Shown here: positions 18,533-32,609 of the stretch, in pieces
Position numbering within the stretch: position 1 is the stretch's first letter
How the letters are laid out: each line of letters starts with the position of its first letter
Sequence record: NC_014636.1
Direction: 5' to 3' (one strand)
Length of the DNA stretch: 64,000 nt
The notes under the pieces: generated by a model
What the model was told of the DNA's origin: nothing
Databases searched by the model: none
The model's input: the letters and a program-made list of their open reading frames with translations, nothing else
Made by a program: the position numbers and the translations under genes

Positions 18533-18921
18533 CGTTTATTCTCCAGTTTTTCAATAAGTGCATTATACAGTGAGATCGCTTCGGCTTCAACAAAATCTGG
18601 TAGATCTAGCATGTCGAAGCACAGACAACGACCGTAGTCCCAACCCAGATTGTAAGCGATGGACTGCCACTTTGCTTTACTGCCAAACGGACGCTTGTTT
18701 GTTTTCAGAAACTCAAGCATGTCAACGGGAACAAAGCTTTCATCGGTTTCACTGAAATCGGCATAGTAGCCTTTCAGGATCATCATGAGTCGATCAAGCT
18801 CGAAAGCTCGTGGCATACGACGATTCATGATTTGCGACCAGTAGGTTATCCGTTTAAGACCAACCGTTTTGGTGTATTCCGCATCCATTTGATTGACAAG
18901 CTTTTTCTTTCTTGCGTCCAT
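18529..18921 (-). CDS. hypothetical protein
   Basis: 130-aa ORF, coupled. Confidence 0.8.
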   Translation of the reverse strand: MDARKKKLVNQMDAEYTKTVGLKRITYWSQIMNRRMPRAFELDRLMMILKGYYADFSETDESFVPVDMLEFLKTNKRPFGSKAKWQSIAYNLGWDYGRCLCFDMLDLPDFVEAEAISLYNALIEKLENKR

Positions 18922-19175
18922 TATTCACCCTTCATTTTGGTTTCGTACTCTTCGATTTGTTCCATAGTCAGCCACTCTGGCTTAGTATCAAAACTGTTCC
19001 ACAGTGCTTTCATGCCTTCGATCTGTTCGGCTACGTTACCCGCCCATAGAGCGCGAGTGGAGCGATTGCCGAATCCAAGGAAGTATTCACAATCCGATTT
19101 CATACGACTCAGCAGCATGTATTTGAATTCCGCATCAGCCTCGCGAGTTTCGATTACTTCTTGAATATAGCACAT
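18921..19175 (-). CDS. LPD11-like protein (large polyvalent protein-associated domain)
   Basis: YMLLSRMKSDCEYFLG...LWAGNVAEQI...KPEWLTMEQIEEY signature. Confidence 0.75.
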   Translation of the reverse strand: MCYIQEVIETREADAEFKYMLLSRMKSDCEYFLGFGNRSTRALWAGNVAEQIEGMKALWNSFDTKPEWLTMEQIEEYETKMKGE

Positions 19176-19764: not shown

Positions 19765-19885
19765 TGGAGGGGAAGGTGGGACTCGAACCCACATACGACA
19801 GTTTGATTTCGATTTAGTTGCCGTAAAGATTCTTGACAGAATCCGCTTTTTCGACTATTGCCTATACCGATTCGGCTACTTCCCC
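19765..19885 (-). ncRNA. tRNA-scaffolded RNA B (121 nt, 3' UCCA) with insert replacing the anticodon loop
   Basis: GGGGAAG/CUUCCCC acceptor, D arm GCC-GAAUCGGUAUA-GGC, T arm GUGGG-UUCGAGU-CCCAC; insert AAAAAGCGGAUUCU-GUCA-AGAAUCUUUACGGCAAC. Confidence 0.8.
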
Positions 19886-19903
19886 AAATTTTTAACAACA
19901 CTA

Positions 19904-20021
19904 TGCTGGCGGTCTGGGATTCGAACCCAGGTTACAGGCTTAACAGGCGAGTATTTGTTGCGGAATACATTCTTATCAGAATGAATTTTACAGTGTCCTA
20001 CCACTAGACGAACCGCCAGCA
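19904..20021 (-). ncRNA. tRNA-scaffolded RNA A with the same insert motif, no CCA
   Basis: UGGCGGU/ACCGCCA acceptor extended ~13 bp, D arm, T arm CUGGG-UUCGAAU-CCCAG; insert AAAAUUCAUUCU-GAUA-AGAAUGUAUUCCGCAAC. Confidence 0.78.
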
Positions 20022-20030
20022 TAATGCTGT

Positions 20031-20159
20031 TTGTTGACGCGATGCTGGATTCGAACCAGCGACGTTTCTCGGTGTGCCCACACTATACCGGATTCGAACC
20101 GGTCCCGATACTTCTCTGCGATCAGAGGCGCTCTCCCACTGAGCTAATCGCGTCAACAA
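20031..20159 (-). ncRNA. tRNA-like RNA G with two T arms
   Basis: GACGCGA/UCGCGUC acceptor, D arm GCUC-AGUGGGA-GAGC, T arms ACCGG-UUCGAAU-CCGGU and GCUGG-UUCGAAU-CCAGC; no CCA. Confidence 0.75.
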
Positions 20160-20654: not shown

Positions 20655-20691
20655 GATGTCGCCATTATAGCGACATCGGATTATCTGTCAA
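20655..20691 (-). promoter_or_regulatory. early promoter with inverted repeat over the -10
   Basis: TTGACA-N16-TATAAT; GATGTCGC/GCGACATC arms. Confidence 0.85.
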
Positions 20692-21030
20692 GTAGAAATA
20701 CGCGATAACGATAAAAACTTTACAGACAATGTGCAGCATTTGATCCGCGAACAAGTTGATCTTGTTCTTGCACTTCATGAGATCGATAATCCAGTGGCTA
20801 ATAAGCTCTGCCAAACTTAGCCAGACGCTCTGGGTTACGACATATACCACGACTGCATGAGTAGATGCGTGGGCAGTGAGCCAGTAAATCCAATGCACTC
20901 CATAGAGTGGAGAGTTGACTGGATGCTTCCCCCTTGCGACGCTATCCGGTTGTAACGTGTAATCGGCAACAAAGTGGCCAATCATCAGCAGATATAAGAT
21001 CTCAAACAATTTTGTCCATTTCTCCCACAA
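20665..21030 (-). CDS. DUF3307-like membrane protein
   Basis: GHFVADYTLQ, AHASTH, SHWIID, DQMLH motifs. Confidence 0.8.
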   Translation of the reverse strand: MWEKWTKLFEILYLLMIGHFVADYTLQPDSVARGKHPVNSPLYGVHWIYWLTAHASTHAVVVYVVTQSVWLSLAELISHWIIDLMKCKNKINLFADQMLHIVCKVFIVIAYFYLTDNPMSL

Positions 21031-22478: not shown

Positions 22479-23912
22479 TTAGTAGTCGATACCGACGTAT
22501 CGGTCACTCATGATCTTGTCGAGCATGATTTGCAGCGGGTTGAAGTCCTTCGCACTCAGGATTGTCTCCATGATAGAAGGGCTGAAACCGGACACAAGCG
22601 CGGTACCGTTGTCATCCTTAGTCACCGGATTATTAGTCGGGCGCGGACACAGGTTCCAGAACACCAGCTTGGGCATTTCGTAACCAGCTTTGCGGTACTT
22701 CGCTTTGATCGATTCGAAGTTGGTTTGTTCACCAACACCGTAACGACGACGGCTGTAACCACCATCAGCCATGTTAAATTCCATGTCAGACAGAACAACC
22801 ATCATAGTCGGCATATCAGACTGGGGAACACGGTTGCGAACAGCGCGATCCAGAATGATATCGAATGCACCAGTGAAGTTGGTAGAACCACCCCACGGAG
22901 CACGACTCAGATGCTCGACCATCGCTTTCAGATTGTCACCTTTCTGCTTGATGTTGTAGAAGCACGGATTATCATCGAATGTAATAATCTCATTCTGGAA
23001 CACACCACGGGAACGTTCGCCGATATACAGACCCAGAGAGATCGCGATATCCATAGCAGACAGACCAGCAACAGCGGTCGGACAGCTCATGGAGCCAGAA
23101 ACGTCGACCATTGCGATCACGTTCTCAGTAGAACCAGCCATCCAGTCGCGTTGTGCTTTCCATTGTGCGTCAGCAGCAACAGAAGAACCATTACGCAGAG
23201 ACTTGATCATGTCGTACGGATATACCGCACTAGCGTTGATCTTGGCATCACCCTTTTTCAGAGATTCCAGATAAGCGACATAACGAGAGTTAGCGTTTTT
23301 CAGGAATGCTTTCTGATAACGAGCAGAAGCAACAGACGGCAGCTTACCGAAGTCGATGCCATCCCATTGACGAGCACACATCTTTTGTTCAACGGTATTC
23401 GACAGACCAACGACCAGTTGACGATACTCTTTGGCAGTCAGGCTCATTGCCTTAGCCAGAATACCAGCTTCTTTGCCCTTACGAGGTGCCCACTTTGCAG
23501 CAAGACCATTACCTTTGATCGCGATAGCGTCAACCATGATCGCAACAGCAGCCTCGCCAATCGGAGAGTCAATCATTGCTACCACGTCTTTGAAGCGACC
23601 GATTTCCGGAGTGTTCATCAAAACAACGGTCGCGTCAACTTCGTGGCGATTAGCCAGGAATTTCAGCAGACGGATGAATTGCTCACGCTCACCAGCGCCA
23701 CCGCGAATATCGCGAGCCCATTGCAGAATGCGCACAGCCCAATCCGGAGATTCGGTATAAGCTTCCTGGAACATGCTAGTCAGATCTTTCCCGCGAGAGG
23801 AACCAATCTGAGAAAACAGATTCAGACACTTATCACCGGTGGTGTAGTTAGTAACAGCACCGTTAGCAGTGCGGGCTTGAGCTTGCACCATTGCGTTCAT
23901 AAAAGCAGACAT
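22479..23912 (-). CDS. DUF2828-family TROVE/Ro60-like protein with vWA domain
   Basis: TANGA, WARDIRGGAGERE, LAAKWAPR, YDMIK, MIDAS VDVSGSM, GGSTNF, LSDMEF, KLVFWNL, ALVSGFSP. Confidence 0.88.
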   Translation of the reverse strand: MSAFMNAMVQAQARTANGAVTNYTTGDKCLNLFSQIGSSRGKDLTSMFQEAYTESPDWAVRILQWARDIRGGAGEREQFIRLLKFLANRHEVDATVVLMNTPEIGRFKDVVAMIDSPIGEAAVAIMVDAIAIKGNGLAAKWAPRKGKEAGILAKAMSLTAKEYRQLVVGLSNTVEQKMCARQWDGIDFGKLPSVASARYQKAFLKNANSRYVAYLESLKKGDAKINASAVYPYDMIKSLRNGSSVAADAQWKAQRDWMAGSTENVIAMVDVSGSMSCPTAVAGLSAMDIAISLGLYIGERSRGVFQNEIITFDDNPCFYNIKQKGDNLKAMVEHLSRAPWGGSTNFTGAFDIILDRAVRNRVPQSDMPTMMVVLSDMEFNMADGGYSRRRYGVGEQTNFESIKAKYRKAGYEMPKLVFWNLCPRPTNNPVTKDDNGTALVSGFSPSIMETILSAKDFNPLQIMLDKIMSDRYVGIDY

Positions 23913-32512: not shown

Positions 32513-32609
32513 TGGTTCTCCGTACGGGATTCGAACCCGTGTACTCGCCGTGAAAGGGCGATATCCTAGCCGTGAAAGGGCGATATCCTAGCCGTTAGAT
32601 GAACGGAGA
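32513..32609 (-). tRNA. tRNA-Glu(UUC) with 22-nt internal tandem duplication
   Basis: 75-nt tRNA plus duplicated GCCGTGAAAGGGCGATATCCTA (32547-32568, 32569-32590); ACCA. Confidence 0.85.

Follow-up and report, generated by a model that had tools for sequence, protein, structure and literature searches.

The window analysed here, the whole 64,000-nucleotide stretch of sequence record NC_014636.1, comes from Aeromonas phage phiAS5 (HM452126; 100% identity), a T4-like phage (Straboviridae, Chrysonvirus). A gene-free stretch of 460 bases between two small open reading frames (ORFs) contains three tRNA-like genes in tandem, all on the minus strand and about 118 nucleotides (nt) long. We refer to them, in their order along that strand, as RNA A, RNA C, and RNA B. 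RNA C, the subject of this report, is a tRNA body that carries a conserved RNA module within its anticodon arm. The three genes are placed as follows:

20036-20153, minus strand: RNA A, first of the tandem trio; the module is absent, and the insert has a second T-arm-like hairpin
19906-20018, minus strand: RNA C core, 113 nt, from sequence reading, cloverleaf search, and folding
19894-20031, minus strand: RNA C with its 13-bp acceptor extension, from the pair count
19768-19885, minus strand: RNA B, a sister tRNA-scaffolded copy with its module core at 19849-19819, an anticodon stem of 5 bp, and a CCA in the gene

An initial annotation of this DNA had described RNA C by its acceptor stem, D arm, lack of CCA, acceptor extension of about 13 bp, and insert, and all of these are present on the minus strand. 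The parts of RNA C are:

20018-20012 (UGGCGGU) with 19913-19907 (ACCGCCA), minus strand: acceptor stem, 7 bp
19914-19930, minus strand: T arm CUGGG-UUCGAAU-CCCAG, read from the sequence
19959-19989, minus strand: module core AAAAUUCAUUCUGAUAAGAAUGUAUUCCGCA, assigned by its fit to the fixed-spacing pattern and by covariation
19983-19968, minus strand: module hairpin CAUUCU-GAUA-AGAAUG, within the module core
19935-19948, minus strand: anticodon-like stem-loop GC-CUGUUAA-GCCUG, with the loop at 19946-19940 and the triplet GUU

The D arm reads GUCU-AGUGGUA-GGAC. The discriminator is G, and the acceptor is followed by GCAU, with no CCA encoded. Thirteen contiguous pairs (20031-20019 with 19906-19894) prolong the 7-bp acceptor helix, so that RNA C ends in a terminal helix of 20 bp. 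The insert reads AAAAUU-CAUUCU-GAUA-AGAAUG-UAUUCCGCA (the sequence also given as UAUUCCGCAAC). It does not replace the anticodon loop but splits the anticodon stem on its 5′ strand, and the CUGUUAA loop persists downstream. A CUG at 19993-19991, before the module, could form the outer three pairs of the anticodon-like stem, and this split stem (CUG plus GC against GCCUG) has one U-U mismatch. The minimum free energy of RNA C is −43.9 kcal/mol (z = −4.8), and none of 200 shuffled sequences folded as well. The RNAalifold consensus of nine C-type sequences contains the acceptor, the D arm, the module hairpin, the T arm, and a short stem closing the 7-nt loop, with compensatory changes in 15 of its 24 pairs. 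Covariance model R1 scored RNA B at 43.2 bits and RNA C, whose sequence was in the training set, at 48.6 bits.

The complete three-gene cluster was detected in 13 GenBank records of Aeh1-like Aeromonas phages. RNA C is 90.6 to 94.5% identical in Aeh1, PX29, Ah1, and avDM12, compared with 82.6 to 85.3% over 521 surrounding bases. The T stem, the tetraloop (GAUA, GUCA, GACG), and a few sites 3′ of the hairpin account for the changes; in Aeh1 the T stem has been rebuilt by compensatory changes (CUGGG/CCCAG to GCUGG/CCAGC). The 13-bp acceptor extension is kept in the same four phages with one G-U to A-U change, and the GUU triplet is unchanged across five Aeh1-group orthologues. The RNA B hairpin of phiAS5 is GAUUCU-GUCA-AGAAUC; among orthologues its helix alternates between GAUUCU/AGAAUC and GAAUCU/AGAUUC, again by compensatory change. 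In these genomes RNA B is labeled tRNA-Val (Aeh1) or intron-containing tRNA-Leu (PX29), RNA A is labeled tRNA-OTHER, and RNA C is unannotated.

The initial annotation had taken RNA C for a second copy of the RNA B module on a different tRNA body and had argued for function rather than decay. Both points are borne out: in several phage lineages, many unrelated tRNA bodies carry the module, and the insert is conserved in orthologues that keep the T stem through compensatory changes. The stem difference between RNA B and RNA C, which it had called compensatory, is indeed so: a G-C to C-G replacement at the hairpin base, in a helix that covaries across the family. The orthologue comparison that it proposed returned compensatory changes, the opposite of random divergence of the insert. 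The residual anticodon-like stem-loop, the fixed nucleotide spacing, and a Ro60-like gene 2.5 kb upstream go beyond that annotation, which named no particular function.

A phage-restricted family of tRNA-scaffolded RNAs

RNA C belongs to a family of tRNA-scaffolded non-coding RNAs that had not been classified before and is restricted to phages. All family members carry the module pattern AA-N-R-N6-CUG-NN-AAG-NN-U-NNN-U-N-C-N-GCA with fixed spacing. The pattern corresponds to an arm of about 31 nt, composed of an A-rich 5′ flank, a helix of 6 to 7 bp whose U-A and C-G pairs close a GNNA tetraloop, and a final U-N-C-N-GCA; after the helix come a usually mismatched position and a conserved R-U pair. 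Weak BLAST matches led to distant members in Citrobacter phage Ci1 and Cronobacter phage S13, which have two tandem RNAs each. One module RNA is present in Aeromonas phage Ahp1 and at least five in KVP40-type vibriophages, and Aeromonas phage LAh_8 likewise has the module.

We then scanned IMG/VR for the exact module pattern followed by GTTCGA within 20 to 50 nt. This search recovered 66 viral loci, almost all of which have a complementary hairpin of 5 to 8 bp. Two positions are conserved even though the search pattern left them free (column 7, A in 59/59; column 2, A in 53/59). The same pattern matched 12 times in 596 Gb of bacterial and archaeal genomes; these cellular matches have no tRNA context and stems of 2 to 5 bp, and therefore look like chance. 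We conclude that the module RNAs are a real family, confined to phages at this search stringency. CCA follows the discriminator in 41 of the 66 members. A long terminal helix without CCA was seen only in the Aeh1-group RNA C and in one KVP40-type RNA (L009 and L128).

Covariation supports the module helix. Across 47 distinct module sequences, both sides had changed in 82 cells, against 39 expected, and none of 500 shuffles reached this value. Sliding the register by 1 to 3 columns lowered helix pairing from 82% to between 33 and 54%. We rejected a reading of CUGNNAA as the 7-nt anticodon loop of the module hairpin because covariation favors the register in which C-G and U-A pairs close a 4-nt loop. 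Small self-cleaving ribozymes (hammerhead, with CUGANGA; pistol; and similar) were also rejected, as Rfam returned no match to them and the motif does not fit. The boxB elements of phages lambda and P22 have a CU-GNNNA-AG hairpin top that resembles the module, a likeness we treat as a lead only.

In most members the module is followed by a 7-nt loop of the form N-U-NNN-A-A and then, as in tRNA, by a 5-nt strand, a variable region of 4 to 5 nt, and the T arm. The point at which the insert breaks the 5′ stem strand differs among lineages:

26/27: several members
27/28: subfamily II
29/30: RNA C, Ahp1, and loci L029 and L018
31/32: RNA B type

In Ahp1, L029, and L018, the ACG before the module and the GC after it form a perfect 5-bp stem with GCCGU. 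Subfamilies I and III (IMG/VR loci L099-L156) each share one tRNA body, and in both the triplet is among the most variable positions while the surrounding loop and stem nucleotides are invariant (..CCAU NNN AAGG..). Working tRNAs show the opposite pattern. The triplets found were GUC, GUU, UUC, UCU, UCG, UAC, CAC, UCC, and GAC, and U33-G34-U35 is present in 31 of 63 loops, about half of the family. The NN positions of the tetraloop are as variable as the triplet.

RNA C has the 7-bp acceptor, the D arm, and the T arm with a GTTCGA-type loop that are expected of a canonical tRNA. It departs from one in its length of 113 nt (about 70 to 95 nt would be usual), in a 5′ anticodon strand split by about 45 nt, and in a loop closed by GC/GC only. 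ARAGORN called neither RNA C nor RNA B. In Rfam, the only matching family was tRNA, to which RNA A scored 40.4 bits with a 56-nt insert and RNA B 46.3 bits with a 50-nt insert; RNA C had no match to the tRNA model RF00005 at the gathering score or at E ≤ 10, and returned only transfer-messenger RNA (tmRNA) at 13 bits. WsnRNA46, YrlA, tmRNA, and other weak hits were far under threshold. The hypervariable triplet of two subfamilies and the separate, normal tRNA-Asn(GUU) that phiAS5 already has argue against RNA C being a decoding tRNA. An intron is also unlikely, since the insertion point varies and we found no ribozyme core (no group I core or intron family in Rfam) and no bulge-helix-bulge motif (by eye only).

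The DUF2828 gene and its linkage to module RNAs

The following features lie upstream of the RNA cluster:

22479-23912, minus strand: gene for a 477-amino-acid protein with DUF2828 and DUF7788 domains (Pfam), the candidate protein partner
20664-20691, minus strand: sigma-70-type promoter TTGACA-16 nt-TATAAT, 12/12 consensus positions, a pattern match only

RNA C and the DUF2828 gene share a strand, the gene lying 2.46 kb upstream of the RNA. The DUF7788 domain of the gene product is a vWA domain, with the MIDAS (metal ion-dependent adhesion site) motif DVSGSMS, and the protein family is PHROG 850, labeled "RNA-binding protein." Pfam gave no TROVE match in this protein. A profile search of the PDB likewise returned nothing significant, the best TROVE/Ro60 chains having E = 0.1 to 0.8 over the MIDAS region. 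An AlphaFold2 model built from 36 homologues had a predicted local distance difference test score of 85.6 and a predicted template-modeling score of 0.85. Foldseek matches of this model to the PDB at E ≤ 0.001 were to Ro60 only; the top seven were all Ro60 (E = 6e-8 to 2.5e-6; entries 1yvr, 2i91, 9nfa, 9nf8, 1yvp, and 9nen), with template-modeling scores of 0.48 to 0.63 over about 560 aligned columns, the full length. The predicted structure has the HEAT-repeat ring and C-terminal vWA domain with MIDAS motif of Ro60, at 13 to 14% sequence identity. We conclude that the 477-amino-acid protein is Ro60-like by predicted fold only.

Homologues of this protein number at least 7,900, with 701 phage records in GenBank. 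Members of the DUF2828 branch are frequent in large phages, among them T4-like, Felix O1-like, Listeria, Staphylococcus, Campylobacter, and mycobacterial phages, and its mycobacteriophage homologues are annotated "Ro-like RNA binding protein." We found no RNA partner or function described for the branch. One mycobacteriophage DUF2828 locus (L090) was checked for YrlA, and no Rfam match was obtained at E ≤ 0.01.

The gene is linked to module RNAs in other phages. In Ci1 and S13, a DUF2828 gene with 48 to 49% identity is followed, at about 500 nt downstream, by a consensus promoter and then by two module RNAs; the promoter directly upstream of these RNA pairs, read by eye, resembles that of phiAS5. 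Ahp1 and LAh_8 have a module RNA and DUF2828 within about 3 kb. All five cultured lineages that have the module encode DUF2828, and co-occurrence at the genome level rests on these five, since BLAST of subfamily I and II RNAs against GenBank phages returned no matches. Across the 66 module loci, DUF2828 was the commonest neighboring protein cluster (14 to 15 loci, at least seven distinct lineages), always on the strand of the module RNA and at a median distance of about 900 nt. As a control, we fetched 119 phage tRNA loci in the same way with a generic T-arm/CCA pattern. DUF2828 was present in 1 of the 119 control loci versus 15 of the 66 module loci (odds ratio of about 35; Fisher p = 7e-7, which is optimistic because the loci are phylogenetically related).

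A candidate Ro60-like partnership and its alternatives

The biology of Ro60 and Y RNAs is well established for animals and for a small number of bacteria. In bacteria and phages, Y RNAs are encoded at most 4 kb from Ro60 on the same strand and include a domain that resembles tRNA (PMC4201824). The Ro60 of a Thermus phage binds host PNPase and two Y-like RNAs that the phage encodes (PMC12135203), and in surveys of jumbo phages TROVE proteins are grouped with RNA-repair genes (PMC7824862). Like YrlA and other Y RNAs (RF02553), RNA C is a non-coding RNA in the range of roughly 100 to 140 nt with a tRNA-like domain that has D and T arms. It is likewise encoded in tandem copies, a few kilobases from and on the same strand as the gene for a ring-shaped TROVE and vWA protein (here Ro60-like by predicted fold), and its specific element juts from the anticodon end of the tRNA-like domain. 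Unlike YrlA, RNA C is not circularly permuted, ends in an acceptor stem rather than a Ro-binding stem, retains an anticodon-like loop, and has as its neighbor a DUF2828 protein without a Pfam TROVE match. The phiAS5 RNAs are not YrlA, given their normal tRNA topology, their lack of the CGAA motif, and the failure of the Rfam YrlA model, whose single match of 17.2 bits bridges RNAs A and C against a gathering score of 69 bits. The GUCGAA in RNA B of phiAS5 is there by chance of lineage, as orthologues have GUCGCA.

We propose that RNA C is a tRNA-scaffolded, Y-RNA-like partner of the phage Ro60-like DUF2828 protein, a proposal to which we give roughly even weight. The predicted promoter sits upstream of ORF0283 and of all three RNA genes, and its full consensus match suggests that they are transcribed from it. 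The tRNA body would most likely serve folding, processing by tRNA maturation enzymes, and stability, and the conserved arm would most likely be a specific protein-binding element, with the phage's own Ro60-like TROVE/vWA protein (DUF2828) as the most likely partner. RNA C would then correspond in function to YrlA and other bacterial Y RNAs and would bind the Ro-like ring, and it may gate or tether that ring to tRNA-handling or RNA-decay/repair machinery during infection, possibly in tRNA surveillance or anti-defense. RNA B would be a second such adaptor. With less confidence, we consider it possible that the module RNAs are the missing partner of the DUF2828 clade and make up a new phage ribonucleoprotein, in which a natural tRNA scaffold would present a protein-binding arm and the freely evolving triplet might select the host tRNA or the tRNA-targeting defense enzyme that is engaged.

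Several observations weigh against the proposed partnership with DUF2828. The module lacks the GNCGAAN0-1G/CGAA motif of known Ro-binding helices, and its topology is not that of YrlA. Of the 11 module loci whose flanks reach at least 4 kb in both directions, just 2 contain DUF2828, and the module was present in only about 5 of 80 DUF2828-centered loci. In KVP40-type phages, the RNAs are more than 6 kb from the DUF2828 gene. Felixounavirus JH2 and Listeria phage AG20 also have DUF2828 next to clusters of ordinary tRNAs, so that the linkage may partly reflect a general association with tRNAs. In 7 module loci, finally, the nearest neighbor is a different vWA protein, and these loci show no DUF2828.

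That neighbor is a vWA/MIDAS protein of about 340 amino acids, whose gene begins about 150 nt downstream of the module RNA (L104, L116, L131, L139, L144, L149, and L159). We rejected it as a Ro-like protein: it is a member of phrog_26613 without a Pfam match, and its Foldseek matches were to generic vWA domains. DUF2828 genes immediately next to ordinary tRNA clusters, and on their strand, were seen in Escherichia phage JH2 (L091), Listeria phage AG20 (L092), and Vibrio phage phi-pp2 (L093), and in AG20, RtcB and an RNA ligase are encoded near the DUF2828 gene. The position of DUF2828 beside tRNA clusters suggests that the whole protein family works on tRNAs.

The main rival explanation, which we judge somewhat unlikely, is that the family consists of tRNA-scaffolded aptamers or decoys directed against a host factor rather than the phage Ro-like protein. 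Possible targets are anticodon nucleases or other tRNA-targeting defense enzymes, tRNA-modifying enzymes, and RNases. The RNA would offer such an enzyme a tRNA shape with an anticodon-like loop, and the arm would block or trap the enzyme. Phage tRNAs are known as countermeasures to tRNA-cleaving defenses (see also PMC12445682), which speaks for such a role. A hypervariable triplet in an invariant loop would fit an arms race over the mimicked host tRNA, and the frequency of U33-G34-U35, the position of the RNAs in tRNA-rich regions, and the absence of DUF2828 from the examined stretch of most module loci point the same way. However, we can name no specific host target, variability of the triplet fits a lack of constraint equally well (the tetraloop NN positions vary as much), and a host decoy leaves the enrichment of DUF2828 beside the RNAs unexplained.

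Two further explanations are less likely. We consider it improbable that these are real tRNA genes (tRNA-Asn GUU for RNA C) with a short protein-spliced intron, from which the insert of about 45 nt is excised and the halves joined, for example by a phage kinase and ligase. Removal of the insert does give a canonical 5-bp stem and 7-nt loop in many members (e.g., ACG+GC/GCCGU in Ahp1 and L029 and GAACU/AGUUC in subfamily II), CCA is encoded in most of the family, and tRNAscan-based annotations name some members intron-containing tRNAs. Yet members of a subfamily built on one body do not keep the same anticodon, the insertion point varies with no fixed distance to conserved nucleotides, and neither a bulge-helix-bulge nor a group I core was found in the searches described above. 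In RNA C itself, the restored stem has a U-U mismatch, CCA is lacking, and the terminal helix is 20 bp long, and phiAS5 already encodes tRNA-Asn(GUU). We also know of no tRNA-splicing endonuclease in these hosts, which counts against an intron. Least probable, and in our view very much so, are functionless, decaying tRNA pseudogenes that have acquired a repeated or mobile sequence. This explanation draws on the database labels tRNA-Pseudo and tRNA-OTHER given to several family members and on the genome papers for Aeh1 and KVP40, which just list "pseudo" tRNAs (PMC1524935, PMC3468402). Against it, compensatory changes preserve the acceptor, D, and T stems together with the helix of the module, conservation is higher in the insert than in its flanks, distant phages space the conserved nucleotides identically, and the architecture is intact in 66 viral loci.

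Other RNAs with extra sequence around a tRNA-like body offer further comparisons. Engineered tRNA scaffolds, used for recombinant RNAs in E. coli, have an insert in place of the anticodon loop and a body that gives folding, processing, and nuclease resistance. Like these, RNA C has an RNA element set in the anticodon arm of a tRNA body; unlike them, it is natural and conserved, with its insert in the 5′ stem strand and an anticodon-like loop left in place. Intron-containing tRNAs (bacterial group I; archaeal bulge-helix-bulge) also have extra sequence in the anticodon arm, and some annotations treat RNA B-type genes as such; the module RNAs differ from them in their insert of about 45 nt, lack of a ribozyme core or bulge-helix-bulge, varying insertion site, and unconserved anticodon.

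The species 1 and 2 RNAs of phage T4 (rnaC and rnaD) are stable RNAs of 119 to 139 nt, encoded beside phage tRNA genes and of unknown function (PMC3014915). The module RNAs resemble them as small RNAs next to tRNA genes, and T4 rnaC ends in an acceptor-like stem and T arm. Homology was rejected: the module is absent, there is no sequence similarity, and R1 has no match in the T4 locus. T4 rnaD (1554-1672 of the 5-kb T4 stretch L160, minus strand) has a hairpin GGUUCC-CUGAGUAA-GGAAUU, whose loop start CUGAGUAAG superficially echoes the module CUGNNAAG; the downstream spacing differs. No DUF2828 was among the annotated features of this T4 stretch. To our knowledge, the whole T4 genome is without a DUF2828 gene.

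The proposed partnership is directly testable, as the RNA family is easily recognized and genetically linked to DUF2828. If it holds, RNA C would be a natural case of the tRNA scaffold principle of RNA engineering. Many phage entries named pseudo-tRNA, tRNA-OTHER, or intron-containing tRNA are members of a conserved non-coding RNA family, and the hypervariability of the anticodon-like triplet may hint that the RNAs take part in the conflict of phages with tRNA-targeting host defense.

Other tRNA-like genes and neighboring ORFs

Other long tRNA-like genes (107 to 148 nt) with unrelated inserts and Leu/Ser-type or other bodies were seen near DUF2828:

L033, 9357-9479 and 9798-9945: long tRNA-like genes
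L038, 9748-9868: long tRNA-like gene
L054, 8267-8381: long tRNA-like gene
L047, 9309-9415: long tRNA-like gene

By a crude detector, such genes were only modestly commoner near DUF2828 than in control loci (7% versus 2% of tRNA-like hits), and they may be further scaffolded RNAs.

Two small ORFs neighbor the phiAS5 cluster:

18921-19175, minus strand: Pfam LPD11 (large polyvalent protein-associated domain 11), E = 2.6e-35
20665-21030, minus strand: Pfam DUF3307, E = 1.4e-12

In the insert of RNA A, a T-arm-like hairpin, ACCGGUUCGAAUCCGGU, and a GUGUGGGCACAC hairpin stand where the other RNAs have the module. RNA A is kept in Aeh1-like phages, with compensatory changes.

The ordinary phiAS5 tRNAs lie at 28 to 38 kb of the window, and CCA is encoded in most. 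The gene called tRNA-Glu (32513-32609, minus strand) is 97 nt long and contains a perfect 22-nt tandem duplication (ACGGCTAGGATATCGCCCTTTC twice) that covers the D-arm and anticodon-arm region and could be either a real variant or an assembly artifact. The tRNA-Asn(GUU) gene (34502-34584, minus strand; 83 nt) does not encode CCA and has an odd GGGUAAUAACCC hairpin in its variable region.

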